Sequence record: MW845759.1
Direction: 5' to 3' (one strand)
DNA length: 64,000 bases
The notes under the pieces were generated by a model. That model had not been told where the DNA came from and made no database searches. It was given only the letters and a program-made list of their open reading frames with translations. Each line of letters starts with the position of its first letter. Positions within the stretch are counted from its first letter, which is position 1. A program made the translations under genes and the position numbers. Positions 1,126 to 17,600 of the stretch are shown in pieces.

Positions 1126-2013
1126 ATGGGCATTAAATTAAATTGGGTAGACCAGTCTGCCCAAAATCTCGACGCGATTGAGATTTACCGCAGTACCTCG
1201 CCTATCGATTCAGATAACCCCGGTAATCCGATTGCGACCCTACCCGGCAATGCAACCGGTTTTGACGATACGACCGTAAAAAATAAAAATGTTTATTATT
1301 ATCGTGTCGTCGCGAAGAAAGGGGTCGACCGCAGCTGGGGGCCGAACCAATTCACGGGCTATTTCGCGGAAACGGGACCGGGTCGTCCTACGCCGCTGCG
1401 TGGCGATTGGAACGCTGCGCTGATGGATCTCATCGCCCCTGCAGATTTTATTACCAACGTGGCGTTGCGTGCGAAGGTGCCGAGCCTAGCCGCGCTACAG
1501 GCGGGGTCAGAACCCACAGTCTGGTTTAAGATGTTTTCGAAGGGTAAAGTTTTCTTTGTACCTAACGCTAACATCGTTACCGCTTCGTGGGCACAACTTT
1601 ATAACGCTGGGCTCGTATATGGGGTCGACGGTGTCGGTGAACGTCCCGCGACGATTGGTGCCGGCGTTGTGAATCAAAAGGTCACCGTGGATATTGGCGG
1701 TCGCCGTTATTTGATTCGCTGCCCGCGACTCTCTCCGTTGCCGGAAACCTCCTTTGCGGCAGCACAGGCGGATACTATCGGTTCGGAATGGCGCACGACG
1801 ATGGGTCGTATGGTGCGAGAAACAGTAGACCCTCAACCGGGTAGCCTGACGCGACTGTACGACAACACGTCATTGCCAAACTTCTTCGGTACGCATTACG
1901 CGTCCGTTGGTAATATCGTTTCTGTAACCGGGACAAAGCCCGAAACCTACGCCACGACCCCCGGTGGGACGAACATGGCCGTGGGACTGGTATTAGAACT
2001 CATCATGCCGTAA
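1126..2013 (+). CDS. Putative virion structural/tail-associated protein, paralog type B
   Basis: 295 aa; closely similar to 4598..5485 (ETGPGRxTPLRGDWNA, LELIMP end). Confidence 0.7.
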   Translation: MGIKLNWVDQSAQNLDAIEIYRSTSPIDSDNPGNPIATLPGNATGFDDTTVKNKNVYYYRVVAKKGVDRSWGPNQFTGYFAETGPGRPTPLRGDWNAALMDLIAPADFITNVALRAKVPSLAALQAGSEPTVWFKMFSKGKVFFVPNANIVTASWAQLYNAGLVYGVDGVGERPATIGAGVVNQKVTVDIGGRRYLIRCPRLSPLPETSFAAAQADTIGSEWRTTMGRMVRETVDPQPGSLTRLYDNTSLPNFFGTHYASVGNIVSVTGTKPETYATTPGGTNMAVGLVLELIMP

Positions 2014-2022
2014 GGAGGCCAT

Positions 2023-3552
2023 ATGGGATTATACACACGTGGTTCGCTGGACTTACTGGGCCAGCTTATCAAACGAGATAACCCCGGCTTCAAAGGCGAA
2101 ATAAATAAGAATACCGTGCTCGTATTAGGCGGTCCTTATACCTCTGGATTAGGCACAAGCGGGCGCAACGCCCGCATAGTGTTGAATGGTAAGACAGGGT
2201 CTGGGGTGGTCGGTAAGAAAGAGTTTTTCTACGACCGCCTCAATATCGCCTCGATGTTCAACGGAATTACTGTTGTCTTCAAAGCCAACGGGCAATCAGC
2301 AACGGTTGCAGACCTTTTACCGGCATTAAACGAGCAGTACGGATTAGGTTTAACCGCAGAAGATATCAGTAACGGCTCTACAAAGCTCGGTACGGGCTAT
2401 TCACCCACGCCGGTGACTCTGACTATCTCTTCGACTTGTGTCGCGTATACAGGCTCTCTGAGCGTCATTTGGACACGTACGCCGGTCGGCGTCTATCCAG
2501 ACTCTGGTCCGGGCAGTAAGACACTGTTGGTTGGTTCTTTACAGGAGGGTTATTTCGGCACAGTAACCGACCTCGAACTGATGTACACCGATGTCCTACT
2601 GTATAAGCTGAATACCCAAGCGAAAACAAACTACGGGGTAAGTACGCAGCCAAGCTCAGGTATCTGGTATAAATTCGCCAAAGATAATAAAGTCTATTAT
2701 CTCGCATCTTCACATGCCAGTGTGATTCGTTGGATGGAGCTGTACAAACTCGGTGCGGTGTATGAGACCAAAACACCTGCGAATAAACAGTCACCGATCG
2801 ACAACGTACAAGTGCCCCAAACGACTCTCGTGAATGTAAACGAGAAAGGTCGCGCGTGGTATCTCTCACCTTGCCTGCCACAGCTTTCCACGACCGACCC
2901 GTGGGATTACTTGCCTGCCAACAAGCAGCCTGACCCTACCGGGGATGTCGCTCGGCTGTTTGCGAAGATTGTGAACAGTGGGACATATGCAACGGGCGAG
3001 TGGGATATTAAGACGCTGACGGGTTCCAGTGTGTGGTTCAGGAATACCGACCTTACGGATAAAACCAAGGGGGTAATCTCCAACCTAAACGGCACGGGAC
3101 AGTCTTTGGCACTTAAGGAGAGTGCACAGCAATGGTGGGTACCGATGCTGGAGCTGGTCGATTTAAATGGCACAGCTGTATCGTTGACTGATATTAACTA
3201 CGCTGTCACCGGCCGACCGCGTGCCCCGCTACTCTCTATTTCACGTGATGTCGACCCGAACCTCCCGGTGCGTTTAACTGATGTTCAGGCAACGTATAAC
3301 CTGTCGATTCGGCGACCGTGGCTTAAACCGCCTACGCTGCTGCCGCTGCTTGCTGTCACGGATGTCGTCCCATCTGCACGGGTTAACCTGCGCAGCTTCG
3401 GCCCGTACCGTGCAACAGCTAACCCACCGAAGACGATTACTGAGGTACGGGCAGTACAGACCTTGCGGCCTATCGCCTTTACCGCACAAACGGTGGTACG
3501 CGACAAAGTTGATCTGTCAACCGCATTTGGCGAGTTAGACGGTTTTAAATAA
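2023..3552 (+). CDS. Putative virion structural protein, mosaic of two local paralog families
   Basis: 509 aa; N-terminus resembles 5536..6051 and 6109..6636; centre has GPGS..L..G....GYFG and W.PMLELVD of types A/B; ends DLSTAFGELDGFK. Confidence 0.7.
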   Translation: MGLYTRGSLDLLGQLIKRDNPGFKGEINKNTVLVLGGPYTSGLGTSGRNARIVLNGKTGSGVVGKKEFFYDRLNIASMFNGITVVFKANGQSATVADLLPALNEQYGLGLTAEDISNGSTKLGTGYSPTPVTLTISSTCVAYTGSLSVIWTRTPVGVYPDSGPGSKTLLVGSLQEGYFGTVTDLELMYTDVLLYKLNTQAKTNYGVSTQPSSGIWYKFAKDNKVYYLASSHASVIRWMELYKLGAVYETKTPANKQSPIDNVQVPQTTLVNVNEKGRAWYLSPCLPQLSTTDPWDYLPANKQPDPTGDVARLFAKIVNSGTYATGEWDIKTLTGSSVWFRNTDLTDKTKGVISNLNGTGQSLALKESAQQWWVPMLELVDLNGTAVSLTDINYAVTGRPRAPLLSISRDVDPNLPVRLTDVQATYNLSIRRPWLKPPTLLPLLAVTDVVPSARVNLRSFGPYRATANPPKTITEVRAVQTLRPIAFTAQTVVRDKVDLSTAFGELDGFK

Positions 3553-4597: not shown

Positions 4598-5485
4598 ATG
4601 GGCGTTAAATTAAACTGGGACGATCAGAGCGACCAGAACCTCGATCGTATCGAGGTTTACCGCAGTGCCAGCAAATCAGACTTGCAAGACAGTAAGAACT
4701 TACTGACTTCATTACCGGGCACGGCTACCTCTTACGAAGACATGACTGTCAAAAGTAAGAATTTGTATTACTACCGAATTGCAGCTGTCAAAGGTACAGA
4801 GTATGCATGGGGTGAACCACAGCTTACCGGGTATTTCTCTGAAACTGGTCCAGGGCGTGCAACCCCCTTACGTGGGGACTGGAATGCTGGGTTAATGGAT
4901 CGTATACCGATTGCTAACTTCATCAGCGGGCCTGACTTACGTCTTAAGGCTCCGGAGTTGGCCGCAATGGGTGGGAACCAAAACCCGAACAACTGGTACA
5001 AGATGGCGTATAAGGGTAAGGTGCTGTATGTACCTGACTCGAACATTGTGGCTGCCAACTGGAATGAGCTTTACAATGCGGGGATGTTGTTTGGTGAAGA
5101 CGGCGTCGGTCAACTACCAACCGGTGCAGCAGGTACGAAGAACCAGCGCTACGTGATTAACATTAACGGTCTGGAATACATTCTGCGTGCCCCGCGTCTG
5201 TCAGCGTTACCGACTACTGACTACATTACCACCACCGCTCAACTTGTAGGTAGTGAATGGAAAGATTGCCTGAGTCGTTTAATTATCTCATCAGTCAACA
5301 ATGACGCAACTGCCCGTACACGCTTGTACGACCAAGCATCCTCGTGGGGTTCTCTCGGCCCGCATCGTGCCAATGCCACAGCTGCTGCCTACGTAGCGGG
5401 CACCAACAGCGAGATTATCGGGGCGCCGCAGCCAATCACCACCCGTCAGTGGTTACCGATGGTTCTTGAACTGATAATGCCGTAA
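4598..5485 (+). CDS. Putative virion structural/tail-associated protein, paralog type B
   Basis: 295 aa; paralog of 1126..2013. Confidence 0.7.
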   Translation: MGVKLNWDDQSDQNLDRIEVYRSASKSDLQDSKNLLTSLPGTATSYEDMTVKSKNLYYYRIAAVKGTEYAWGEPQLTGYFSETGPGRATPLRGDWNAGLMDRIPIANFISGPDLRLKAPELAAMGGNQNPNNWYKMAYKGKVLYVPDSNIVAANWNELYNAGMLFGEDGVGQLPTGAAGTKNQRYVININGLEYILRAPRLSALPTTDYITTTAQLVGSEWKDCLSRLIISSVNNDATARTRLYDQASSWGSLGPHRANATAAAYVAGTNSEIIGAPQPITTRQWLPMVLELIMP

Positions 5486-5496
5486 AAATAAGAGTT

Positions 5497-5537
5497 ACTA
5501 CTCTCCCGAAAGGGAGAGTAGTTTCTTTTCTTTTTTT
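5497..5537. terminator. Intrinsic terminator between convergent genes
   Basis: Stem actactctccc-gaaa-gggagagtagt followed by T-rich tract; A-rich upstream. Confidence 0.85.
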
Positions 5538-6051
5538 AGACGAAGCCATCCAGCTCAGCGTTCTTCCACGCCAGTACATCCTTACCAGTATAGACACGGA
5601 ACACGTAGCTACCCTGCCACTTTAAATGGTTCGGGCTAAAAGTCAATTTGATATCACGGTACTCGTCCTGATTCTCATCGACTGCCAATTCAGTACGGAC
5701 GATAGTGACTTCAGACATCAAGACCGGATGGTTAGGGAGCGACGCGTTCATTACCGACAACACCATGTCGTCACTATCCCAGTTGTACTGAGCATCGTTA
5801 ATGATACTGCTGGGTTCGTCTTCCCCGTTCGGGTGGGTAAAATTAAACCGGAAGAAGTGGTATTCTTTACTGCCTGTAAAATTCGGACTGTCTGCTTTAG
5901 CGGTGATCACTAACGCGGTGTTTCGCGTGTCGCCGTCACCAGTGGGTGCGTAATTCGTGGGGTTACCAAACTCAACATCGGATAAAGCTAAACCCAAGTT
6001 CGGGTTTTTGGCATTAATCATGCCAATGAACTCTTCCTGCAATGTAGCCAT
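5536..6051 (-). CDS. Putative virion structural protein (ELDGF-tail family)
   Basis: 171 aa, RBS ggagg; paralog of 6109..6636; ends KNAELDGFV. Confidence 0.7.
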   Translation of the reverse strand: MATLQEEFIGMINAKNPNLGLALSDVEFGNPTNYAPTGDGDTRNTALVITAKADSPNFTGSKEYHFFRFNFTHPNGEDEPSSIINDAQYNWDSDDMVLSVMNASLPNHPVLMSEVTIVRTELAVDENQDEYRDIKLTFSPNHLKWQGSYVFRVYTGKDVLAWKNAELDGFV

Positions 6052-6108: not shown

Positions 6109-6636
6109 TTACGCGGTAAAGCCGTCCAGTTCACCGTCAGTGGTGCTCAGGTCGGTTTTCACGATCTCTTCAGTTACCGTGTAGGTCGCAATCTGACCTT
6201 CGTGGTACTTGATGTGGCCAGCGTTGATAGACACACTGATAATCAGCGGGTCTTCTTCGGTACCAGCACCGTCACGGGTGATGGACAGCTCAGCCAGTGT
6301 GAACGCGTCTTCCGCGCGGCCCGCTGCAATCACGTCAGCATTCAGGACAGCCAATACTTCTGCATCGGTATCCCAGTCAGCCAGATCCGCGGTTACCGCT
6401 TTCGGACCAACTACACCTGCAGACAGACGGATGTAGTGCAGTTCGACATTACTGGTGAAGTGCTCACTCTCTGCTTTTGCAGTGATAGTGATTTTGGAGT
6501 CACGACCGCCAGTACCACCGTCTAGTGCAGAAGCGGCGCTGAAGTCAACATCGGCCACAGACAACGCCTGCGCCAGACCCGGGTTTTTGGTGTTAAACAA
6601 CTCTACCAGCTGCTGCTGGAAACTCTTAATAGCCAT
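6109..6636 (-). CDS. Putative virion structural protein (ELDGF-tail family)
   Basis: Start moved to MAIKSF at 6636 (RBS gaggg); ends DLSTTDGELDGFTA. Confidence 0.7.
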   Translation of the reverse strand: MAIKSFQQQLVELFNTKNPGLAQALSVADVDFSAASALDGGTGGRDSKITITAKAESEHFTSNVELHYIRLSAGVVGPKAVTADLADWDTDAEVLAVLNADVIAAGRAEDAFTLAELSITRDGAGTEEDPLIISVSINAGHIKYHEGQIATYTVTEEIVKTDLSTTDGELDGFTA

Positions 6637-6682
6637 GTTGCAATTCCCTCTGTTAACAGTTGAGGTGACGGGTGTCGTCATA

Positions 6683-6727: not shown

Positions 6728-7252
6728 TTACAGGTTCGGAACGATTTTATTCCATTCGATAGGTTGCTGTTTAATCACCGTTACCACCCCACGCGTTGGC
6801 GACCATACGGTTAAGTCCGGTTGGTTACGCACGTCGAAATGGAACCAGCTAATATCGGTTTCGAGGAAGTGAATGAACGGGAACTCATTCGGGTTCTGCT
6901 GAATGTAGGCACGCACAGCCTGCGGCGTATAACTGACGAACGTCAAGTCCATCGCCCCGCCGTATTTGTGCATGCTGTCAGACGCCGCATAAAGCTCGTG
7001 AGCGCGTTCTTTATAATTGCCACCCTTTGGTTGCTCTTGATTAATAAAGAACTGTAGCGTGCGTACAGAGCGCTGTGTCATGCCTTTCGCTGGTGAGTTG
7101 ACAATGATAGCACCGAATTTGTTACGCAGCTGCTGTAACGTGAGCATCACCAACGGGTTAATGATGTACGCCGCGTTCTTCCCCCGGCGTTTGATGATAT
7201 CCGGCGGCATTAACTCTTCGAGTTTAAACTGGTTGGGGTTGGGCTGAAACAT
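6728..7252 (-). CDS. Peptidase M15-family Zn metallopeptidase (possible peptidoglycan hydrolase)
   Basis: SMHKYGGAMD (H-x6-D) and WFHFD motifs typical of LAS/M15 peptidases. Confidence 0.75.
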   Translation of the reverse strand: MFQPNPNQFKLEELMPPDIIKRRGKNAAYIINPLVMLTLQQLRNKFGAIIVNSPAKGMTQRSVRTLQFFINQEQPKGGNYKERAHELYAASDSMHKYGGAMDLTFVSYTPQAVRAYIQQNPNEFPFIHFLETDISWFHFDVRNQPDLTVWSPTRGVVTVIKQQPIEWNKIVPNL

Positions 7253-7916
7253 TTGACTCTCCTGCGGTAGGGATAGGGTAGGTCAGAAATGCGCGTTTCA
7301 CGTTTAAGTAATGTACGTGCGCCTGCTGATGGGTTCGCACCATGGTCATGTCCTGCGGCGGAATACCCACCGATGGAAACTCACGGACGAACTCATAGTT
7401 GGCGTTCATGTTAAACGTGTATGCGTTCGGTTTAAAGTAAATGCATCCTTTGTTGTTGTCGATAAACGACGTCAAGCCAAAATGCTTCACTGCCAAATAA
7501 AAGGACTGACGTGTAACCCAATTTACCCCGAGCGCTTTCATGGCGTACAGGAACATGCGGTCCGCGAAGTTCTTGTCGATAAAGGCGTTCAGTTTTCCCA
7601 CCCCGTCGGAGGGGTAGTTGCCGATAATCGGAATCTTCTGGTAAAGCAGGTCGTGCAATGCGGCCGCGGGGCCGTAGTCACCTTCCGGTTTAAACAAAAA
7701 CTGGAGCTGTGTGGGTATTGATGCTAAATCGGTTACAAACCCTTTCGGGGCAACCAAATATAAAGGCATATCGGCTTTTAACCCGGTTTCCTTTAAAATG
7801 ACCTCGAGACGTGTCGGGTCGTCCTCAAACAGACCAGCTAAAGTAAAACCGAAGGTGTAGTCTTTCGTTAAGATAAACCACTGCTTATCAAAACGGCAAT
7901 ACTCGAACTTATCCAT
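7224..7916 (-). CDS. DUF1353-domain protein
   Basis: GFVTDLASIP, AAALHDLLY and ADRMFLYAM motifs characteristic of DUF1353. Confidence 0.8.
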   Translation of the reverse strand: MDKFEYCRFDKQWFILTKDYTFGFTLAGLFEDDPTRLEVILKETGLKADMPLYLVAPKGFVTDLASIPTQLQFLFKPEGDYGPAAALHDLLYQKIPIIGNYPSDGVGKLNAFIDKNFADRMFLYAMKALGVNWVTRQSFYLAVKHFGLTSFIDNNKGCIYFKPNAYTFNMNANYEFVREFPSVGIPPQDMTMVRTHQQAHVHYLNVKRAFLTYPIPTAGESNVSAQPQPV

Positions 7917-7984: not shown

Positions 7985-8641
7985 TTACAGCTCAGCGACA
8001 AACTTCTCTTTCAAACCTTTGAGCGTCGTGTAATCACTCTTCTCAGCGGCTGTCCGAGCAGTCTGTTTAAAGTCGGTCATCTTTTCATGCAGCCCATTGG
8101 TACGCGCAACAATGGCTTCGTTCAACGCTTTCAAATCATCCAGCGTGAATTCGAATTTCGCATTATTGGTATCGACCCAGTAACCCGGGTCTTGCTCTGT
8201 CGAAAGGTAACGACTGATCGCCGCTAACGCTTTCTCATCGGTTTGATAAACCCGACCGTTCAGTTCGAGTGGGGCGACCACTGCTTCACTGTACGCTTGG
8301 TTTACCCACGCAATGAGTTCGGTCAGTAACGCGACACACTTCCCGTGCGTCGAGATGCGCTCCGCCTGACGCTGGGCCAAATCAATCCCCAGCACATCAC
8401 TGATAAAGGTGTGTGCGGACTTAAGCGTGAACTTAATCTCCAGCGGAGACAAGCCCTGCGCTTTCAGTTGGGAAGACAGCTCTTCGTCTTTCATCCCGTC
8501 CAGCAAACGGTAATGTGCCAGACGAGACAGAGACGGGTTCCAACGCGAGTCACTTAAATGTCCATCCACGAACTGGCCGTGACGGTCAATCAGTTTCCCG
8601 CTGTTGAGAAAGCGATCTTTTATTTGGTCATTACTAAGCAT
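7985..8641 (-). CDS. DUF4376-like protein (tail-fibre-associated/chaperone candidate)
   Basis: C-terminal NGRVYQTDEKA...YWVDTNNAKFEFTLDDLKAL..AI pattern resembles DUF4376, which is often found beside tail fibre genes. Confidence 0.6.
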   Translation of the reverse strand: MLSNDQIKDRFLNSGKLIDRHGQFVDGHLSDSRWNPSLSRLAHYRLLDGMKDEELSSQLKAQGLSPLEIKFTLKSAHTFISDVLGIDLAQRQAERISTHGKCVALLTELIAWVNQAYSEAVVAPLELNGRVYQTDEKALAAISRYLSTEQDPGYWVDTNNAKFEFTLDDLKALNEAIVARTNGLHEKMTDFKQTARTAAEKSDYTTLKGLKEKFVAEL

Positions 8642-9183
8642 TCAGTTTTCCCCAGGATGCCGACGTCTTTCAGCAGACCGTAGTCGAGGAACGAGTAGTC
8701 CTTCGCCAAGTCATACTGCCAAACGAGGTTAGACACGCGCGATTCCACCGGCGTTTCTTCAGCAGTGTTGAACACCCCGATATGATCCCACAGCTCAAAG
8801 TAGTTGCACTGGTCTTTGTTGTCGCGCACCACTTTGATTTTGTTGTTCGGGAACGATTGCGCCAAGGCAATCAGCGAGTCAACCTGCTTGTTACGTTTCG
8901 CACGGAACAGCACAGTCAACTTGCTCGGCGGGGTATCCAGCATACGCTGCTCTAAGCCGGCGTTACGCAGTTCAGCGTTCGCCAGTGAGTTATGGCCGTT
9001 CTCCACACAGTCCAGCTCAATGTGCACGTTCAACGAGTGACGTACAACCAGCTTTTTCACTGTGTCGGTGTAGTGCTCTGCTTTACACAGGATGCTTACA
9101 TCGAACAGCTTATGCTTCGTCAGAAAGGCATCCAGCAGCGTGGTATCAAGCCGAGTAAAATTGTGAATCATCAATGACTGCAT
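8620..9183 (-). CDS. Hypothetical accessory protein of the radical SAM cluster
   Basis: Likely start MQSLMIHNF at 9183 (or 9171); overlaps both neighbours, suggesting translational coupling. Confidence 0.7.
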   Translation of the reverse strand: MQSLMIHNFTRLDTTLLDAFLTKHKLFDVSILCKAEHYTDTVKKLVVRHSLNVHIELDCVENGHNSLANAELRNAGLEQRMLDTPPSKLTVLFRAKRNKQVDSLIALAQSFPNNKIKVVRDNKDQCNYFELWDHIGVFNTAEETPVESRVSNLVWQYDLAKDYSFLDYGLLKDVGILGKTECLVMTK

Positions 9184-10492
9184 TAGGCTTTTCCTGTTTT
9201 GCATGAACGTGTGGTTGAACAGCCTCTGGTTTCGCGCCAGAGAGTTTTGGAAGTTTGTTTTCCTGCGAGGCTTTAACACGGCACTCGTAGCAGTTGCACG
9301 ACAACGGTTTGAACTGGTCGCCATAGGTACCAAAACGACGTTCCCACCATTGGGCAGTTAACAGCTTAGCGGTGGTCCAGCCGCACTGGCGACGTTCCGA
9401 GTGATACTGCTTACGCGCATCCTCTTCACCGTCACCATTCTCGTACGCTGCAGCTACGCAGGACGCACAGATGTGTTTGGCCGGGCAGCCCAGACAAGCA
9501 TCGGGGTACGACTGCCACTGGGTCTGGACTTCGTTCAGGAGCTTACCGCCGTCGGTGTTGACAATCTCACGACCCACGAGCTTCGCAATTGCCTGACGGG
9601 TGGTTACGGTGGACATGAAGCGGTTACAACCGTAGATGTTACGGTCAAAGCCGAGGCAGGTCATGTGAACCGTGGTACCACAGTGCGGTTTCAGACGTTC
9701 AGGGTCGTAACGAATCTGATCGTTATGCTGTAACATCTCACGCCATTCCGGAGCCCACATGTTATCGATGTTCATACCACGAGGGGTGATGTGCCCCATC
9801 TCAGCGGTCGGGTCTAAGTGCAGACCTTTACCAATCCAGTATTCCAGCACTTCAATCATCTGGTTAGAGATGCCGAGTGCCATATCACGTGGAATGATGT
9901 CTTCGAAAATCATGTTACCGTAAATAGTGCCGCCACCAGACTGGTCAATCAGCGACTTCATGGACGCCGCGTAATGCTTCAGCGTGTCATGGGTAAAGGT
10001 CGCTTTAATCCCGAGGTCGTTGATTTTCATCGACTTCAGGTAATGATAACCTTCCAGCGCTTTCTCGTAGGAACCTTTACGAGAGGTGGTGAAGATACGG
10101 TGACGGTCGTGGGTTTCCGGCAGACCATCGATTGACACGCCGATAGACAGTTTCGGATACCAGCGCTCAATGATTGAACGGTTTAACGGCTTATCAAAAA
10201 GCGTTCCGTTCGTGGAGATGGAGAACATGTATGGGCGGTTATCACGCGCCGCTAACATCTCTGCAGTTTCGAAGGCCGCAATCAGCAGCTTCGGTTGCAG
10301 GAACGGTTCCCCACCGATAATGTCGATAATCGCGCCGCCTACATTCGGCTTGCCGCGGTCACGGTCAAAACAGGCGTGGATGAAGTCAACCACGTCATCT
10401 ACACGGTTGTTACGCGGGAACTTGCGCTCGTAGCAATAATCGCAATCGAGGTTACACGACAAGTTCGTAACAATCTGATACGTTACGTCCAT
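9146..10492 (-). CDS. Radical SAM enzyme with SPASM-type domain; predicted peptide maturase
   Basis: CNLDCDYC, GGEP, STNGT, SIDG motifs; C-terminal C-x7-C-x9-C ... CxxC-x5-C-xx-C ... C; extra CNCYEC tail. Confidence 0.9.
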   Translation of the reverse strand: MDVTYQIVTNLSCNLDCDYCYERKFPRNNRVDDVVDFIHACFDRDRGKPNVGGAIIDIIGGEPFLQPKLLIAAFETAEMLAARDNRPYMFSISTNGTLFDKPLNRSIIERWYPKLSIGVSIDGLPETHDRHRIFTTSRKGSYEKALEGYHYLKSMKINDLGIKATFTHDTLKHYAASMKSLIDQSGGGTIYGNMIFEDIIPRDMALGISNQMIEVLEYWIGKGLHLDPTAEMGHITPRGMNIDNMWAPEWREMLQHNDQIRYDPERLKPHCGTTVHMTCLGFDRNIYGCNRFMSTVTTRQAIAKLVGREIVNTDGGKLLNEVQTQWQSYPDACLGCPAKHICASCVAAAYENGDGEEDARKQYHSERRQCGWTTAKLLTAQWWERRFGTYGDQFKPLSCNCYECRVKASQENKLPKLSGAKPEAVQPHVHAKQEKPNAVIDDSQFYSA

Positions 10493-10505
10493 TACAACAT
10501 CCCCC

Positions 10506-11381
10506 TCAGGACTGTGGCAAATTTAGGTAGGTGTGCAGATACTTGTAAGCCTCTACACCGATGATTTGGGCCATGGCATTACAGCCTGAGTTGACGTAGA
10601 AGTCTACGTTCTCATTGTGCTTAATGTCACCGTTGGGTTCTACCAGTTTCAGCTGACCGCAAGCGTTACAGTTGGTGTGGTCGAAGAACTTCTCCAGACG
10701 GAACACCGTATTGATACCGTTAACGCTATTGAGATGCTGCATCTGTTCTTCAATACGCTTGTAGCCGTAAATGAAGTTCAGCACGTGGTCCTGATTGAGA
10801 GGTTTGTGCATCAGTTTATCAAACGTCAGGGTCATAGCACCCACACGTAAGTGATGCAGCGCAGCATGCAGGCGCATGGTGTCTTCAAACCAGCGCGGTT
10901 TGCTAACGTGTTCGCGGGTCAATACGCCCCACGTAACAACATTGTCCAGCGCGTGCATGACTTCAAACGCTTCGTGCGCCCCTTCTTCCACAAACGCCAT
11001 CAGACTGCGCTCACCGCCTTCAAAATGGTCGATGGAGACGATGATGCGGTCAAACGTTTTCAGGAAGTCGAGCTGCGAGAGTTTGAGTTTTCGGCCGTTG
11101 GTAAACAGCAGGTGTTTTGCGGAAGGCACTTGCTCACGTGCTTCGCCTACAAAGTCAACTAACTTCTGGTAGGCCAATAACGGTTCGCCGCCCGTCCACA
11201 GGAATTCCTCTACTTGAGGATTTTCTTTTATAATGTCCACCATTGCCTCTTTGTGTTTTGTTTTCGAAACATCACCCTTGGCCATGTGAGCTGCCCCTCC
11301 ACAGAAGGAGCAGTTCAGGTTGCACTTAGACGTCAGGGCAATGTCAATCATGGTAGCAGACGACTTAGGGGTATCGTGCAT
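10506..11381 (-). CDS. Second radical SAM enzyme (short C-terminal Cys motif)
   Basis: CNLNCSFC, TGGEPLL, FTNG, VSID motifs; C-terminal CNAC...C; likely start MHDTP at 11381. Confidence 0.88.
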   Translation of the reverse strand: MHDTPKSSATMIDIALTSKCNLNCSFCGGAAHMAKGDVSKTKHKEAMVDIIKENPQVEEFLWTGGEPLLAYQKLVDFVGEAREQVPSAKHLLFTNGRKLKLSQLDFLKTFDRIIVSIDHFEGGERSLMAFVEEGAHEAFEVMHALDNVVTWGVLTREHVSKPRWFEDTMRLHAALHHLRVGAMTLTFDKLMHKPLNQDHVLNFIYGYKRIEEQMQHLNSVNGINTVFRLEKFFDHTNCNACGQLKLVEPNGDIKHNENVDFYVNSGCNAMAQIIGVEAYKYLHTYLNLPQS

Positions 11382-12303
11382 CAGGGTTTTTGTTCCACAG
11401 ATTTTCCATGAACGCGAATAACGGGTCGGAGACACGAACGTCTTCACCCGGGACGATCAGTTTCGGGTCATGGTACGCTTTAAGAATAGCATCCAGCACC
11501 TTGTTGCGATCGTTTAAACGCAGCAGCTCATCCACCGTCACGGTCTGACGGGTAAAGGAACTGACCGCATTTTGCTCTTCGGCCGACAGCAGACCCGCTT
11601 CATTGACTTTACCGACCAAGAAGGTCAGCACACGATGTAAGTCCGCGGTAGTGTTAGGTTGCTCACCGTACTCATACTGCAACAGATAGTTGGTCCACGG
11701 CTTACGAATGCGTTTGGTAATCTCATGCGCATCGGTAATTGCGGTCCACTTCATATCACGGTGGTCCCATGTAAATTTATAGGAATACGCGAGCAGGTCG
11801 GCCAGACAGTCAATACCTAACTCTTCGTACCCTTCAACCGGGTAGTAACGCTCGAGGTTGAAATAGCCGTCATCAACGGTACCTTCTTCAACCAGCGTAT
11901 AATAGAACGGGAACGACGACGGGTATTCCCAGTTCCACTGACGCTGAATCATCGGTTTCATGCCGTGTTCTTTGAACGAGGCAAACACCATCTCCAGCGG
12001 CATGGAATAGTTCAGCACCGCATCCGTGAAGTAATACTTTTCATTGACGAGCTTACCGACGTACTCCGTCGTGCCGTCGAGGTTGTACAGAATTTTAATC
12101 CGTAACCCATCCGGCGTGGTAAACTCTTCACGCACTTCTGCATGATTTAAAATATCACGCGGACGCAGACGAGGAAATTCACCCGGGTTCATGCAAATCA
12201 AACGCAGGCGATCATTCACGTGGTCGTTTACCGCATCGGGCAGCCCAAGATGGATTGGGTAGTTAAAGTTGGTACGAAACGCCAAGTGTTCATTATTCTT
12301 CAC
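11365..12303 (-). CDS. Hypothetical accessory protein of the radical SAM cluster
   Basis: 312 aa, GTG start with RBS taaggag 10 nt after the preceding stop; aromatic-rich; no recognised motif. Confidence 0.75.
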   Translation of the reverse strand: MKNNEHLAFRTNFNYPIHLGLPDAVNDHVNDRLRLICMNPGEFPRLRPRDILNHAEVREEFTTPDGLRIKILYNLDGTTEYVGKLVNEKYYFTDAVLNYSMPLEMVFASFKEHGMKPMIQRQWNWEYPSSFPFYYTLVEEGTVDDGYFNLERYYPVEGYEELGIDCLADLLAYSYKFTWDHRDMKWTAITDAHEITKRIRKPWTNYLLQYEYGEQPNTTADLHRVLTFLVGKVNEAGLLSAEEQNAVSSFTRQTVTVDELLRLNDRNKVLDAILKAYHDPKLIVPGEDVRVSDPLFAFMENLWNKNPDARYP

Positions 12304-12313
12304 GGATAGCTCC

Positions 12314-12523
12314 TTACGATGGCCACGTTACCGCTTTAGTGCCACCTGATGCTGACCAGCTGCAGCTGCCGTTACAACGGTAGGCCCCAGCCGGAATATT
12401 GTTTAAACGGTTCGCGTTATTCACCGTCCCCCGCGTGGCGATATAGTTATTCGCAGACGCAGTCGTGATGTACCCTTCGAGACGGGCGATTTGTTGCGCA
12501 ACCTCGTTCAGTGAAACAGCCAT
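12314..12523 (-). CDS. Short paralog of the Cys-repeat proteins (2 Cys only)
   Basis: RBS taaggag; MAVSLNEV leader, NANRLNN, RCNGSCSWS. Confidence 0.8.
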   Translation of the reverse strand: MAVSLNEVAQQIARLEGYITTASANNYIATRGTVNNANRLNNIPAGAYRCNGSCSWSASGGTKAVTWPS

Positions 12524-12532
12524 AGCGACTCC

Positions 12533-12931
12533 TTACGGTCCTGAGCAACCAGAGCATCCCGTACAAGACGACGAACAGCTACCAGAGCAGCCGCCTGAAC
12601 AGCCTCCCGAACAACTTGTAGAGCACGTACCGGAACAGGTTCCCGTACAGTTACCCGAACAACCCCCAGCACAACCACCGGTGCAGTTAGACGAGCACGA
12701 ACCGCCGCACGTCCCTGAACAAGTGCCTGTACAACCGCCAGAACATGCAGAGCCGCATGACCAGCTACAAGTGCCGCCACAGTGGTAATAGTTGGCGTCT
12801 TGACCGGCTAATCGGTCGACGTTGTTTGAAGTTTTACCGCCGATGTACGCTTGAACCCCTGCTTCTGTTTTCAGTGCAGCGGACTCAATGTTGTTCATCT
12901 GGTTCTTTACTGCATTAAGTGATACAGCCAT
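12533..12931 (-). CDS. CXXX-repeat Cys-rich protein 2 (putative radical SAM substrate)
   Basis: RBS taaggag; 50-aa leader plus 82-aa core with 21 Cys in Gly/Ser/Thr-rich CXXX repeats. Confidence 0.88.
   Translation of the reverse strand: MAVSLNAVKNQMNNIESAALKTEAGVQAYIGGKTSNNVDRLAGQDANYYHCGGTCSWSCGSACSGGCTGTCSGTCGGSCSSNCTGGCAGGCSGNCTGTCSGTCSTSCSGGCSGGCSGSCSSSCTGCSGCSGP
12536..12781 (-). repeat. Coding CXXX tandem repeat (12-nt period)
   Basis: 18 CXXX units followed by CTG CSG CSGP. Confidence 0.9.
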
Positions 12932-12942
12932 GGTCGCTCTCC

Positions 12943-13329
12943 TTACATCGGACCAGAACAGGCCGAACAGCCCGTACAGGAACTAGAACAAGAGCCAGAG
13001 CACCCGTGACCACATCCGCCGGAGCACGATGAGGAACAAGCACTACCACAGCCACCCACGCAGGTGCCGGTACACGTGCCGGAGCAACTCCCGGAACACG
13101 TACCAGAACAACCACCGGAGCAGTTACCGGAACAACTCGAGCAACCATAGGAGCACCCAGACGAACATGTCCAGCTACAGCTACCGTTACAGCGAATGTC
13201 CCCGGGTGACATACCACCCAGATTGTTTGCGTTAAATGCTTTGGTTGCAACCTGATTGTCCACAGAAGGTCCTGTGGCCAAAGACAGTCTCGCAATTCGC
13301 GCATTAACGTCATTAAGTGAAACGGCCAT
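12943..13329 (-). CDS. CXXX-repeat Cys-rich protein 1 (putative radical SAM substrate)
   Basis: RBS aagga; 46-aa leader plus 82-aa core with 21 Cys. Confidence 0.88.
   Translation of the reverse strand: MAVSLNDVNARIARLSLATGPSVDNQVATKAFNANNLGGMSPGDIRCNGSCSWTCSSGCSYGCSSCSGNCSGGCSGTCSGSCSGTCTGTCVGGCGSACSSSCSGGCGHGCSGSCSSSCTGCSACSGPM
12946..13191 (-). repeat. Coding CXXX tandem repeat (12-nt period)
   Basis: CXXX units with one early CSS unit, ending CTG CSA CSGPM. Confidence 0.9.
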
Positions 13330-13383
13330 ATGCTTCCTTTAACGGGCGAACTCGCATAGAGTAACGCCCTGACGTTATAAGAG

Positions 13384-14583
13384 TTATCTGGTACCTGCAG
13401 CCGACTGGAGATCGTCGCGGGTAGTGAGGCTGTTGTTAACGTGAACAGCCGCTTGCACCACGCCACCGGTGTTTTTGTTGAGGTACTGGTCGTGTGGGTT
13501 AGCCGCGGATTTGTGTGCTGCGAGATCCGAGTTGGTGTTGGCCAACGCCTGCTCCAGAGCCGCGATGCGATTTTCGAGACCTTGGTTCGCTGAGCTCATG
13601 TTCGCAATCTGCTGTTTCAGGTTACTGATTTCCTGATTCGCTGCTGCAAGACCCTGAGTAAGGGTACCGAGCTGTTGCGAGAGCAGACCGACCTGCGTTT
13701 CCAGCACCAGAATCTCATCCATCAGCTCAGCAATCTGCAGCTGGGTTTTCTGGTAGTTCTGGTCGACGGTGTTCAGCTGGGTGTTCCACGTCCCAATCGA
13801 GCTAACCAGTGCGGCAATCTGCTGCGTTAAGTTAGTGTCGGTTGCACCCAGGGTGCCGATATCTTGCAGGACAGCGTTAATGCTACTCTGTACTGTTTGA
13901 ATCTGCGCCCGGACTTCGGCGGTGGAGTAAACGTCCAACTGGCCACGGGTAATGTTGTGCACGTTACCTTCAGCCGTACGGTGCTCTTCTAATGCTGACA
14001 GCATTTCTTGACGATACGCTTTGAGCATGTTCTGAATCTGCACCATTTCAGCAGACGCGCCGATACGGATAGCGTCGTTAAGCTTAGACAACAGCGTAAC
14101 AATATATTCAAAACCGAAGAAGTCGCCCATGTCACGAAATGCCGGTGCACCCGCAAACTCGTCAGGCACATCGCGCAGCTCAGCGAAGTTAATTGTGGGG
14201 TCATCTAAGTTCAGCGTATTGATACATTGAATGATGTTGTCCACGTTCGCGGCATACGGCCCACCAACAATCTGAGCCGACGCGGTAATGTCTGCTGGGA
14301 CTGTCGATTTAGTAATAACGATGGCTGTGGCAATCTCACGTCCACCGGCTTGTTTAGTCAGGGACGGGTGGAGCAGAATCACTTCGTAGTTGGTGCCCCG
14401 AACGAGTGGCTGATTAGGCGCATTCACCGGAGCCATTCGAAGCGTATCAACAAAGAACGGACCTGTCGGGAAAGCAAACGCTCGGTTAACAGTACCGGTA
14501 CCGAGTTTAATCGGATGCGATACGGCATTACTGAGGTTGGTTCCGAACAGGTCCAATGGGTATTGCATTGCTACCTTACTCAT
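13384..14583 (-). CDS. Putative short fibre/whisker protein with long coiled coil
   Basis: N-terminal YPLDLFG..N domain shared with the three large fibre proteins; roughly 130-residue Gln/Leu heptad region; H...NPH motifs. Confidence 0.7.
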   Translation of the reverse strand: MSKVAMQYPLDLFGTNLSNAVSHPIKLGTGTVNRAFAFPTGPFFVDTLRMAPVNAPNQPLVRGTNYEVILLHPSLTKQAGGREIATAIVITKSTVPADITASAQIVGGPYAANVDNIIQCINTLNLDDPTINFAELRDVPDEFAGAPAFRDMGDFFGFEYIVTLLSKLNDAIRIGASAEMVQIQNMLKAYRQEMLSALEEHRTAEGNVHNITRGQLDVYSTAEVRAQIQTVQSSINAVLQDIGTLGATDTNLTQQIAALVSSIGTWNTQLNTVDQNYQKTQLQIAELMDEILVLETQVGLLSQQLGTLTQGLAAANQEISNLKQQIANMSSANQGLENRIAALEQALANTNSDLAAHKSAANPHDQYLNKNTGGVVQAAVHVNNSLTTRDDLQSAAGTR

Positions 14584-14610
14584 CGGAAAAACTCCTTGTG
14601 GTGAGTAAAG

Positions 14611-14634
14611 AGTGGGGAGCCGAAACTCCCCACT
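14611..14634. terminator. Hairpin between tail fibre gene and short fibre gene (weak terminator or processing site)
   Basis: agtggggag-ccgaaa-ctccccact; only a weak U-tract on the minus strand. Confidence 0.5.
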
Positions 14635-14638
14635 TTAT

Positions 14639-17600
14639 TTACACGCTCAGGGTGGAATCATGAATCATAACATCAAGGACAGTTGCCGTTGTTGCATCAA
14701 AATAGATGTCAACGTACTTGCCGCCCGCGAATGCACGTTCTTCCGTCCAGAACATAACCGGAGCTTTCGCCCCGCCCGATTGACGCATTGCCAGAATATA
14801 GTCTTTCCCCGTAGGGACGACGATGGTCTGGCCGCCCACTGCATTAGTACCGGTCAACGTCGTTGGACTTGCAGGGTTAGGCAGTTTAACACCTGTCATC
14901 GCCGCATTGGATACCGCGAGTTTTGTCGTACCGTCTTGCACCAACTCGAATGCAATATAGCACGGCGAATTACCCGGGGCTTCCTTAACAACGAAGGCTA
15001 ACGCGTTGGGTTGATTTAACAGCGCACCTGTCAGTGTCAGGTTAGCGTTCCCCGACAGCGTCCCTTTGGAGACACCGTTAAGGTACACATCCACCGAATC
15101 ATCAACCTGCACGTTCAGCACCAACGATGAAGAGGTTGGCGTGAAACTGGTCTTTGTTGCCCATGCAGTTCCGGCGGCCAGTTTACTCTCCGGCAAGAGA
15201 GTAATTGCAGGCGAGGCTAATGGTGGACTATAGGCGCTAGCTCGAGTCCCAACATTCGGCCAAAGCTTCTCGGCATAGTTGGTCAGCAGCATCCACGGGA
15301 ACGCCGACGCTGGGAAAGTCAGGCGTTGGATGGCGTTGAAGTTACCGCCTAACTGGTTTGCTGTTTCCAGCGCCGCAGCTGTGCCGTAAGACTTCGTTAA
15401 ATCCGCACCCGGACGAGTGATGTTCCAGAACCGTGTAGCATTCTGAGACGTTGCCCCGTACCCGAACCGACAACTGCGTGCAAAGGTCGGCGCCGCCGTC
15501 ACCAAGTCCACTTCCGCGTATTTATACGTGGCTGTGTTTCTTAGCTGACTTAACGTTAACCCCTTCTTCGCCGCAATGATGGCGCGGATGTTGTCATCCC
15601 GCACACCGGTGGTTGGCAGTAACGCGTGTTCTACCGCGATATACAGCTTGTTACCGCGCCGTTCAGCATACACGTGCGCATACCACTTACTCCATGCCAG
15701 CAAGTCCGTGGTGTCCGCATCCAACGTAGTGATTAAACGGGAGGATGCTTGGCGGTAGTTCTCTTTGAGCTGAATCAGGCCGGACAGGTTAACGTGTGAC
15801 TCAATCGAGTTGCCGATAGCCAAACATAACGTCTGCTCTACATTAGCCGCAGTGTCTTCCTTCTTCAATGCTGCGAGCACCACCGCAACACCGTCGTTGT
15901 CACCGTCGTTAGAAGTGACGACCGTATTGAACACATAGTCGCCCACCAATTCGTCCGAGATAAAGCCCACGAACGTTGCGGTGTTTAACGTACATTCAAC
16001 AACGTCGTCCGCTGCCACGTATCTCCATGCCACTAACTCTGACTCGTTCGCAGGTTGCGCGACGGTAGAGTTGTTGTGGCTGAAACGGTACCAGCTATTA
16101 TAGATGTCTTCGAACGATGGGAAAGCAAACGAGTCTACCGTCCCTAAGTTTTCCATGTTCGAGTACAACGTATCCGGCGCCGCCGCACTTGGCAGGTAAC
16201 CGTGTGCGTAGCGGTTATCGGCATGACTCAACAGTGCACCAACGCGCCCCAGTCGTTTAACGCGACTGATTTTCGCATCTGTGATTGCATTGCTGGTCGT
16301 CGTGGCATAACCAATATACAGCCGGGAAGCGGTGTCCGGCAGCTGGGTTTTCGACACTAGATACTCAGCCACTCCAGATGCATTTAACTGCACGTGGAAA
16401 TAGAACGTTGCATCTTGGTAGTCCGTAGGGAATAGCGTTTTGAAATCGAACGTCGCCGCAGGGACAAGGTGGTCTTCCATCTTCGCAAAGAACGGAACCG
16501 CTTGCGTGATGTACAGAATCATCCCTTCTGCGACTTGCGGGCCAAAGAGTATTGTGGGGCGCCCGCCGGTTTCAAACGCAATACCTTTCCCGCTGTAAAC
16601 CGTCCCCCCGAGATAAACTCCGAGCATTACAAAACCAATTTTTGCGATCTCATCTGTTTCCTGAAGATACACATAGTCGATTTCATTATTAGACGGGTTA
16701 AACGAAATACGCGTACCTGTCCATGTTGTCAAATCTTGAGAGATTTTCAACAGGTAACTCAAGTCGGTGCTAGAGCTACTGGTATTCACACGACATAGCG
16801 TTCTTGTCCTTAATAACCAGCCGTCGGAACGCTTAATCAAACGCATCTGGCTCATCTCTGCCAAATCATTGAGCGTGACCGCAGACACCCTGAATTTCTC
16901 TTCCTTCCACACCTCGATACCACCGAGCATCGACAGCGAAATAATTCCATTGTCAAACGTCATCGGGATACGGTAGAAATAAGTGCTGTTATCAAACCCA
17001 CCGGCCGTCGCGTTCGGGGTCAGAATACAAGTTTGCAGCACGCAGAGGTTTTGTCCTCCGAAGTCAAAGATACTCAGCCAAGCGATTCGCAGCGTAGGAT
17101 CAATAGCCAACCAGCCCGGAATTTTCGCGTCTAAGAAGTTTTCAATAGCTGACCACTGCTCAGCACTGATAGTAACCCTCTCGTTGGTGATGGTGGTGGT
17201 GCCTGCGATATTTCGATACGCACGACTTTCTGCCTTTCTAAACGAAGCACCGTTGAGATAGGACTGACTACCGTTATAGACTTGTCCCAGGCGACAAATC
17301 GCTTCGTAGTCATTTTGCGACACGACCTCACGATCATTAGACGGCCCCCAACCCACATAATCCGGCACGCCGTAGGTAGTGTCCGTGTCGTACGCAATGC
17401 TCATACACGACCCGGTACTACGTTGACGAAGAAGCATTTTCTTGGCAGTGCCGCCCAAAGCCGCCATCCCGCGCATTCTAAGAATGTACGGCGAAGCGTA
17501 TGGTCCAAGCACATTCACACTGTTTCCAATTGAGTTGGTCCAATCGGCATTCCAGCGGGCGCTTTCAAACGCGTCAGCATTTGGTAAGCGGAAACGCACC

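Follow-up and report, generated by a model that had tools for sequence, protein, structure and literature searches.

The DNA analysed here, referred to as the window, is a stretch of 64,000 nucleotides from sequence record MW845759.1. Our subject is a module of six genes within it, which encodes two radical S-adenosylmethionine (SAM) enzymes, designated rSAM1 and rSAM2, an accessory protein of 312 amino acids, and three proteins, A, B and C, with a common N-terminal head, followed in A and B by a ladder of regularly spaced cysteines. The region 9000-13400 matched the Erwinia jumbo phage pEa_SNUABM_38 (MW845759.1, Derbicusvirus, 224 kb) at 100% identity, phages EarlPhillipIV and Derbicus at 97%, Phobos at 81% and Cronobacter phage CR5 at 76%. 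Each of the six genes forms a full frame with 0 stops and 0 frameshifts, and none is broken. In MW845759.1 the two enzymes are listed, with the same bounds, as 'hypothetical protein', and A and B are not annotated. The genes of the module and the motifs within them are given below by their positions in the window.

9146-10492, minus strand: rSAM1, predicted 448-aa radical SAM/SPASM enzyme (Pfam Radical_SAM, NCBIfam, profile against CteB 5WGG)
10433-10456, minus strand: CX3CX2C motif of rSAM1
9383-9682, minus strand: SPASM cysteines C271-C370 of rSAM1 (motif)
9281-9298, minus strand: extra CxCxxC motif of rSAM1
10506-11381, minus strand: rSAM2, predicted 291-aa radical SAM enzyme (motifs, AlphaFold2 model, fold matches)
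11301-11324, minus strand: CX3CX2C motif of rSAM2
11184-11192, minus strand: GGE motif of rSAM2
10581-10670, minus strand: auxiliary cysteines C238, C241 and C267 of rSAM2 (beta-hairpin plus helix, Twitch-like)
11365-12303, minus strand: accessory protein, 312 aa, phrog_8030, co-conserved with rSAM2
12314-12523, minus strand: protein C, 69 aa, head-only paralogue without a cysteine ladder (phrog_6085; CNGSCSW at 12356-12376)
12533-12931, minus strand: protein B, 132 aa, head plus CxxxC ladder of 21 cysteines at 12545-12781 (TIGR04114)
12943-13329, minus strand: protein A, 128 aa, head plus CxxxC ladder of 21 cysteines at 12958-13191 (CNGSCSW at 13171-13191; TIGR04114)

The cysteines of rSAM1 are at residues 13, 17, 20, 41, 271, 279, 289, 333, 336, 342, 345, 370, 399, 401 and 404, and they make up CNLDCDYC, C-x7-C-x9-C, CxxC-x5-C-xx-C, a distal cysteine and CNCYEC. 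A preliminary description of this DNA had reported a 448-aa enzyme with a SPASM-like cysteine set and an extra CNCYEC, and the motifs proved to be exactly those it had listed. In 19 homologues, down to 22% identity, C13, C17, C20, C271, C289, C333, C336, C342, C345 and C370 are invariant; C279 is retained in closer relatives only. G60 and G61 of a GGE-type SAM-binding motif are invariant and E62 is near-invariant. rSAM1 passed the Pfam model Radical_SAM (PF04055) with 45.9 bits against a gathering threshold of 29.5. A profile of the rSAM1 family matched CteB (5WGG) at E 4.7e-41 over CteB residues 97-451, covering both the core and the SPASM domain, and seven cysteines of rSAM1 (C271, C289, C333, C336, C342, C345 and C370) aligned with the SPASM cysteines of CteB. 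Judged from its sequence, rSAM1 is a SPASM enzyme with seven cysteines that could bind two auxiliary [4Fe-4S] clusters. Its best full-length matches in NCBIfam were PapB (NF047865; 113.2 bits, residues 12-348) and TIGR04115 (111.5 bits, residues 3-362 on model positions 4-343 of 359), and by homology it is distantly related to the CXXX-repeat maturases (TIGR04115/PapB/CteB). Profiles of the radical SAM enzymes also matched the epimerase YydG and the sulfatase maturase anSME.

The CxCxxC motif (residues 399-404) was found in 71 of 76 close homologues of rSAM1 but was missing from all 11 that were shorter and more distant. C41, which is conserved in the close clade, could be the fourth ligand of this site. 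The low-complexity tail mentioned in the preliminary description does exist; it is better described as a variable linker after CxCxxC (9146-9298, residues 399-448) with a conserved end. The C-terminus follows an aromatic-Tyr-Glu/Ser-Ala pattern in 44 of the 76 close homologues (...QFYSA in the window) and could be a docking motif.

rSAM2 has six cysteines in total, three in CNLNCSFC and the others at C238, C241 and C267, in agreement with the earlier account of an enzyme of about 291 amino acids with only CNAC...C beyond the core. The cysteines of CX3CX2C, the GGE motif (G64-G65-E66) and C267 are invariant in 21 homologues, down to 21% identity, and conservation of C238 and C241 is at least 90%. 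The Radical_SAM model was passed with 43.1 bits (threshold 29.5). In the AlphaFold2 (AF2) model, with a predicted local distance difference test score (pLDDT) of 91, a partial barrel is followed by a beta-hairpin and a helix with C238, C241 and C267; these three cysteines flank the predicted strands 244-247 and 253-255 and the helix 268-274. CteB was the best fold match, followed by SkfB (E 1.8e-10) and ChlB, with viperin-like enzymes and SuiB close behind. The top PDB match of the rSAM2 profile was TigE (8VPO), a cyclopropyl synthase of the RS-SPASM subfamily of maturases for peptides that are made on the ribosome and then modified post-translationally (RiPPs), which acts on a repeat peptide. 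No curated cutoff was approached: the top NCBIfam match, HxsC, scored 49 bits (cutoff 267.9), and the Twitch-domain model NF033640 scored 32 bits (cutoff 170), only three auxiliary cysteines being present. Considering its sequence, its model and its neighbours, we infer that rSAM2 is a minimal Twitch-like peptide-modifying enzyme with a three-cysteine auxiliary site. The differing auxiliary architectures noticed earlier are apparent, with 7-8 cysteines of SPASM type in one enzyme and three Twitch-like ones in the other.

Relative to the orthologues in Phobos and CR5, the ratio of nonsynonymous to synonymous substitution rates (dN/dS) was 0.06 for rSAM1 and 0.09-0.15 for rSAM2. Both genes are under purifying selection, and from their motifs both enzymes look catalytically competent; the suggestion that one of them might be dead is contradicted by the intact motifs and by the selection on both. 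When an rSAM2 profile was searched against 1.84 billion representative proteins, about 25 full-length clusters (50% identity) were found among the best 150 matches, and the remaining ones of these 150 covered the generic N-terminal core only. The family of rSAM2 is small, and its members were encountered here on phage-like contigs only. PHROGs assigned rSAM1 and rSAM2 alike to phrog_1802. An origin of the two as recent duplicates was rejected: the best BLASTP E value between them was 0.053, and there was no significant similarity outside the cluster motif.

A, B and C are encoded directly upstream of the accessory protein and the enzymes, each with its own ribosome-binding site and with spacers of 9-11 nt, and all three belong to phrog_6085. 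Their common head is about 50 residues long and has CNGSCSW or CGGTCSW (C-x-G-x-C-S-W) at its end. After the head, A and B each continue for about 80 residues with cysteine at every fourth position, 21 in each protein. The spacer residues are almost exclusively Ser, Gly and Thr, with 0 acidic and 0 basic ones, and one-residue irregularities of the spacing are partly conserved across lineages. Both proteins reach the cutoff (20 bits) of TIGR04114, the CXXX-repeat target family, A with 20.0 and B with 23.8 bits. In the cysteine frame, dN/dS was 0.05-0.08 for the three genes (0.05 for C), with synonymous sites saturated. The corresponding stretch lies at 3094-3486 and 3497-3901 of L003 and at ~9536-10408 of L002 (loci are designated by L numbers), and the cysteine frame is the one under purifying selection. 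Among lineages, the cysteine counts of A and B co-vary (21/21, 21/20, 21/23, 31/33, 15/16 and 21/22), and one may speculate from the matching ladder lengths that A and B pair in register.

The stretch encoding A and B has been misannotated, in SPN3US in another reading frame (gp166) and in CR5 as a plus-strand open reading frame (ORF), CR5_157. Long alternative-frame ORFs also lie over the ladders in the window, one at 12465-12788 on the plus strand, rich in Pro-Glu-Gln repeats, and one at 12508-12780 on the minus strand. Being by-products of a repeat with a period of 12 nt, they are likely to mislead gene callers.

To describe the distribution of the module, we compared 19 related jumbo-phage loci, namely 18 full-length loci from IMG/VR and SPN3US. 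In 19/19 of these, the genes occur in the order tail protein (gp167 homologue), A, B, C, accessory protein, rSAM2, rSAM1, small protein and DUF4376 protein. Using tblastn, rSAM1 was detected in 83 phage records, nearly full length in 63; the full-length matches listed were in phages of Erwinia, Salmonella, Escherichia, Cronobacter and Proteus. Components of the module recur in L005, L006, L052, L133, L134 and L135, in some cases with extra rSAM copies or with a single cysteine-ladder protein. Overall, the module was found in all 19 jumbo-phage loci as well as in four or more further lineages of phages, and its surroundings were tail genes in every case. L134 and L135 have it complete, with two long proteins, a head-only protein, the accessory protein, rSAM2 and rSAM1. 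Protein C is present in 19/19 jumbo-phage loci and in L052, L134 and L135, and homologues of the accessory protein were identified by sequence in L005, L052, L134 and L135. In L005, a GpJ-like tail gene precedes the gene of a 258-aa tail-fibre-repeat protein, after which come a homologue of the accessory protein, two genes of rSAM2-like and one of rSAM1-like type, and the gene of a 601-aa fibre protein; the C-terminus of the 258-aa protein consists of the head motif and a cysteine ladder. L006 and L133 contain fibre genes, DUF4376, one cysteine-ladder protein and two or three radical SAM genes, the ladder gene following GpJ-like or giant fibre genes and DUF4376. As a separate observation, L134 encodes at 4749-4970, ~200 nt upstream of the cysteine-ladder genes, a 73-aa protein of the Acb2/Tad1 hairpin family (anti-CBASS/Thoeris sponge-like).

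An rSAM2-type gene adjoins an rSAM1-type gene in every recovered locus (the 19 jumbo-phage loci and 7 further loci or contigs). Either gene may come first, and in some cases the two overlap. In L052, an 83.6-kb phage contig, rSAM1 and rSAM2 have been duplicated as a pair (8001-10305 and 12133-15748), and the ladders have 31 and 33 cysteines. L021 (5459-6370) and L022 (5458-6369) possess an extra rSAM2-type gene between A and B but no extra rSAM1. By synteny, the enzymes are tied to neighbouring cysteine-repeat genes in every locus examined.

These arrangements bear on two other roles for rSAM2. It might modify a nucleotide or other small molecule, as a viperin- or MoaA-like enzyme, and be a mere neighbour of the cysteine proteins; in NCBIfam and PDB searches its viperin-like and MoaA matches came near the scores of peptide maturases. 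However, the scores for viperin_w_prok (43.1 bits, cutoff 180) and moaA (41.3 bits, cutoff 284) are far under the family cutoffs and come from the N-terminal core only, and the top folds are those of peptide maturases. An unrelated substrate such as a nucleotide had been raised in advance as an objection, and the modelled fold of rSAM2 is slightly nearer to peptide maturases than to nucleotide-acting enzymes. The constant adjacency to rSAM1, the paired duplication in L052 and the insertion between ladder genes in L021/L022 also argue against a small-molecule substrate, which we consider very unlikely. Alternatively, rSAM2 might be an obligate partner of rSAM1, as a subunit of a hetero-complex or a donor of electrons or clusters, and not an independent catalyst. 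Genes that are always adjacent, sometimes translationally overlapping and duplicated as a pair would be expected of such partners, and electron transfer between PapB molecules has been reported (PMC10470005). A mere electron donor, however, would not need the complete SAM-cleaving site (CX3CX2C and GGE) that is kept in rSAM2 under selection, and the additional rSAM2 in L021/L022 has no additional rSAM1 to serve. A partner role of this kind appears to us highly improbable.

The nearest cellular relatives of rSAM1 were 23-29% identical to it and included proteins of Ruminococcaceae, Termititenax, Clostridiales and Lachnotalea. CxxxC-repeat ORFs are found beside most of them, from 52 aa up to ~660 aa in Termititenax (112-122 cysteines). 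The latter are proteins of 661-667 aa with all of these cysteines in CxxxC register, encoded upstream of a 399-aa TIGR04115-like enzyme (275 bits) in L054, L055 and L056 (Candidatus Termititenax/Margulisiibacteriota); they are the largest cysteine-ladder proteins found in this analysis. The relatives scanned in L053, L060 and L050 pass the TIGR04115 cutoff with 383-513 bits. In L060 (5950-8112), TIGR04115 is fused to a C-terminal TIGR04119 'CXXX repeat peptide maturase' domain; proteins of similar size (706-728 aa) occur in L057, L059, L061 and L063, the domains having been scanned in L060 only. rSAM2 and the accessory protein were rejected as TIGR04119 homologues, because hhalign against the TIGR04119 domain of L060 gave probabilities of 4% and 0.5%, respectively. 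None of the cellular CxxxC loci examined contained rSAM2, the accessory protein or the CSW head. The full-length family matches, the profile match to CteB and the presence of relatives beside CxxxC-repeat ORFs suggest that rSAM1 works like a CXXX-repeat maturase, although by curated score it is a non-member.

The ladders might instead be structural elements that bind metal or iron-sulfur clusters or form disulfides, with the radical SAM enzymes performing epimerisation, Cys/Ser oxidation or C-methylation. Ladders without Asp/Glu acceptors, profile matches to the epimerase YydG and the sulfatase maturase anSME, and scores below the cutoffs of thioether-enzyme families would all be compatible with such chemistry. 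On the other hand, the best full-length matches of rSAM1 (PapB and CteB) are thioether-forming, bacterial members of TIGR04115 are paired with the same kind of repeat, and CrpA, a cysteine-rich precedent, receives thioethers. We regard the absence of thioether chemistry from the module as unlikely.

The surroundings of the module were examined further. From ~20.3 kb down to 5.5 kb of the window, all genes are on the minus strand and densely packed. Besides the module, this block includes the following features.

14639-20323, minus strand: 1894-aa giant tail/baseplate-fibre-like protein, positional counterpart of SPN3US gp168 (by gene order)
13384-14583, minus strand: coiled-coil tail protein of the virion, 399 aa, homologous to SPN3US gp167 (homology, synteny)
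8620-9183, minus strand: conserved 187-aa protein, phrog_7988, downstream of rSAM1 and overlapping its end (PHROGs)
7985-8641, minus strand: DUF4376 protein, 218 aa (Pfam); the domain also adjoins cysteine-ladder genes in the distant phage loci L006 and L133
7963-7982, minus strand: terminator-like hairpin directly after the DUF4376 gene, with an 8-bp stem, 6 G-C pairs and a T-run
5536-6051, 6109-6681, 6728-7252 and 7224-7916, minus strand: two DUF7941 paralogues (...ELDGF ends), a protein weakly similar to Peptidase_M15 and a DUF1353 protein; the last of these domains is also found near the module in L052

A scan of the region for promoters and terminators gave counts no higher than in shuffled sequences, and only the hairpin after the DUF4376 gene was convincing. 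This hairpin is probably the end of a transcription unit, although the evidence is suggestive only, and the module would then probably be co-transcribed with the fibre genes. The gene order around the 1894-aa protein matches the gp168 region of SPN3US, and gp168 has been likened to phiKZ gp131, a baseplate-periphery protein (PMC5105663). The published proteome table of SPN3US has gp167-gp171 as virion proteins absent from tailless particles, whereas gp161-gp166, including both enzymes and the accessory protein (gp163-165), are unlisted. In L135, a 634-aa protein with a Peptidase_S74 domain (tail-fibre intramolecular chaperone) is encoded at 1256-3160, directly upstream of the rSAM1-type gene, and is a further link between the module and fibre genes.

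The tail context is relevant to the fate of A, B and C. They could be classical RiPP precursors, in which the head is a leader to be cleaved and the modified cores are released as bacteriocin-like or host-manipulating peptides unrelated to the virion. The architecture of a leader-like head followed by a repetitive core is that of such precursors, the enzymes come from families of RiPP maturases, and these enzymes are absent from SPN3US virions. However, scans with Pfam, NCBIfam and PHROGs revealed no leader peptidase or exporter in the conserved module, which is always within tail gene blocks; in L005 the ladder is fused to a tail-fibre-repeat protein, and the strict conservation of a head-only paralogue lacking a core is hard to square with a disposable leader. 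From their sequences, A and B do not look like leader-core peptides for release, because they are encoded inside a tail gene block, their heads resemble segments of fibre proteins, and a ladder of the same kind ends the 258-aa protein of L005. Release of A, B and C as peptides therefore seems improbable.

The preliminary description had proposed a division of labour, with one enzyme for the CSW head and one for the repeat. rSAM2, the accessory protein, the head motif and the head-only paralogue occur together in 5/6 phage lineages and 0/9 cellular ones, a distribution that is fully confounded with phage versus cell. Five of the six lineages with rSAM2 thus have the head and the head-only paralogue, and the bacterial relatives of rSAM1 are without both; this supports the proposal indirectly, and weakly in view of the confounding and the exception of L006/L133. 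Because the head is the only part common to A, B and C, and because of the co-occurrence of these four components, we tentatively assign rSAM2, together with the accessory protein, to the head; this is a weaker inference than the role suggested for rSAM1. The accessory protein had 0 matches in Pfam and 0 in NCBIfam. Its model (pLDDT 84) gave no Foldseek match to PDB better than E 0.03, and in BFVD it matched its own orthologue only.

Taken together, the intact enzymes, the matches of rSAM1 and the repeat genes beside its bacterial relatives, the fold and profile matches of rSAM2, the scores of A and B reaching TIGR04114, the synteny, the co-varying cysteine counts, the tail context and the precedent of CrpC make us lean, by a modest degree, towards a two-enzyme system in which the six-gene module installs thioether-type cross-links in fibre-like proteins of SPN3US-like jumbo phages. 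By means of the 5'-deoxyadenosyl radical and of two auxiliary clusters, rSAM1 would link cysteine sulfur to a carbon of nearby ladder residues, yielding thioether cross-links of sactionine or ranthionine type, like those made by its relatives PapB, CteB and CrpC. With no Asp or Glu in the ladders, a PapB-type link from cysteine to an acidic residue would be impossible, and the acceptors would have to be Ser, Thr, Gly or backbone carbons. The three-cysteine auxiliary site of rSAM2 could leave an open iron for a substrate thiolate. Less firmly, rSAM2 may introduce a further modification of another kind into these proteins, for which the head motif is the likeliest site. The probable task of the accessory protein is to present or chaperone the substrates. 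The products would be covalently stiffened, redox-insensitive components of the tail fibre or fibre tip, and not released peptides. We speculate that a covalent, redox-independent cross-link would suit a fibre assembled in a reducing cytoplasm.

Several observations weigh against this interpretation. rSAM1 is far under the curated cutoffs of its best families (PapB, 113.2 against 340 bits; TIGR04115, 111.5 against 350 bits). The Pfam SPASM model was not matched by rSAM1 at E values up to 0.1, only Radical_SAM and Fer4_12 being listed. The canonical SPASM spacing is CX2CX5CX3C; in rSAM1 and its homologues the final spacing is CX2CX5CX2C in 84 of 87, and never x3. The lack of Asp and Glu in the ladders of A and B removes the acceptors used by PapB. 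rSAM2 matches viperin and MoaA at similarly low scores, and TIGR04119 was absent from the module in the NCBIfam scan. In L006/L133 an rSAM2-like gene is present, yet the cysteine-ladder protein has another head, which contains Trp, and a CSW head is absent. Finally, the cysteine proteins have never been reported in a virion. We grade this last point as uninformative and not as negative, because the genes are unannotated or annotated in the wrong frame, and because ladders with 0-2 Lys/Arg across lineages (0 in A and B of the window) would be invisible to tryptic proteomics.

A broader proposal is possible rather than probable, and we put it forward tentatively: the tail fibres of several lineages of tailed phages may be built in part of cysteine-ladder proteins that a dedicated pair of radical SAM enzymes cross-links covalently within the reducing cytoplasm of the host. 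No earlier example of radical-mediated, RiPP-type post-translational cross-linking would then precede it for a structural protein of a virion, and rSAM2 and the accessory protein would form a maturase pair that is both new and specific to phages, with the C-x-G-x-C-S-W head as its target. If so, the well-studied model phages SPN3US and CR5 and ~60 sequenced relatives encode heavily modified tail components in genes that are unannotated or mis-framed, and standard tryptic proteomics would miss these components. Radical SAM peptide chemistry would be extended from secreted natural products to the architecture of viruses, with a rationale in the covalent, redox-independent stiffening of fibres assembled under reducing conditions. 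A natural two-enzyme system with a simple repetitive substrate would also be of use for studying the choice of acceptors by thioether-forming enzymes. The module is linked, moreover, to uncharacterised bacterial CXXX-repeat systems, including the Termititenax proteins with ~120 cysteines. At minimum, two genes need to be added to the GenBank record of pEa_SNUABM_38, and the frames in SPN3US and CR5 need to be corrected.

Among known systems, the bacterial CXXX-repeat system (TIGR04115, TIGR04114/PF27846 and TIGR04119) resembles the phage module in having a SPASM enzyme without an N-terminal recognition domain beside proteins with Cys-x3 repeats. To our knowledge, it has been defined by genome context and not by experiment. 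It differs in possessing TIGR04119 and in the family score, only 111.5 bits being obtained for phage rSAM1 against the cutoff of 350. The phage module, for its part, has rSAM2, the 312-aa accessory protein, the head motif, the head-only paralogue and a place in a tail gene block, all of which are extra relative to the bacterial system.

PapB, the best-scoring named family for rSAM1, acts on PapA, the precursor of the ranthipeptide freyrasin in Paenibacillus polymyxa, which also has cysteine motifs with a period of four residues. PapB forms thioethers (PMC9413430 and PMC10739248). It links Cys to Asp/Glu in a C-x3-D/E substrate, whereas the phage ladders have no acidic residues, and PapA is a short peptide, whereas the phage substrates are 128-132 aa long. 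CteB, the SCIFF thioether maturase acting on CteA (5WGG), is the only strong relative of rSAM1 with a solved structure and is also the top fold match of rSAM2. Its N-terminal recognition domain (~96 residues) is missing in both phage enzymes, and its final SPASM spacing is CX2CX5CX3C, against x2 in the phage clade.

CrpC, a SPASM enzyme of Methanococcus voltae described in 2026, installs ranthionine links in the cysteine-rich protein CrpA (PMC13692751). The paralogues CrpA and CrpB, like A, B and C, have in common the N-terminal ~47 residues and diverge afterwards (PMC13692751). Unlike the phage module, the CrpC system is archaeal and related to iron/sulfur physiology, with 17-residue units containing C-x-x-Q/D, a predicted recognition domain and one enzyme; rSAM1 scored 50 bits against TIGR04463 (CrpC). 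SkfB (6EFN), the second-best fold match of rSAM2, is a radical SAM peptide maturase, a sactisynthase that makes a Cys thioether; its truncated SPASM domain, of Twitch type, holds one auxiliary cluster. It is 13% identical to rSAM2 and has an N-terminal recognition domain, whereas rSAM2 has three auxiliary cysteines. HxsB and HxsC resemble the phage pair in combining a SPASM enzyme, a shorter radical SAM enzyme and a substrate with a short-period repeat, but the repeat is His-x-Ser and not Cys-x3, and the scores are low (rSAM2 against HxsC, 49 bits with a cutoff of 267.9; rSAM1 against HxsB, 54 bits with a cutoff of 370). We know of no phage link for HxsB/HxsC.

In the literature, we found no paper linking these phage enzymes to cysteine-ladder proteins or to the tail; in one cyanophage paper, a radical SAM gene appears only in a list, classed under 'antibiotic synthesis'. 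Pairs of CXXX repeats and maturases were already known as curated bioinformatic families, and so were thioethers on an archaeal cysteine-rich protein (PMC13692751). What seems to be new is a version embedded among phage tail genes, to which a further radical SAM enzyme of a family of its own, an accessory protein without a fold match and a head-only paralogue have been added.

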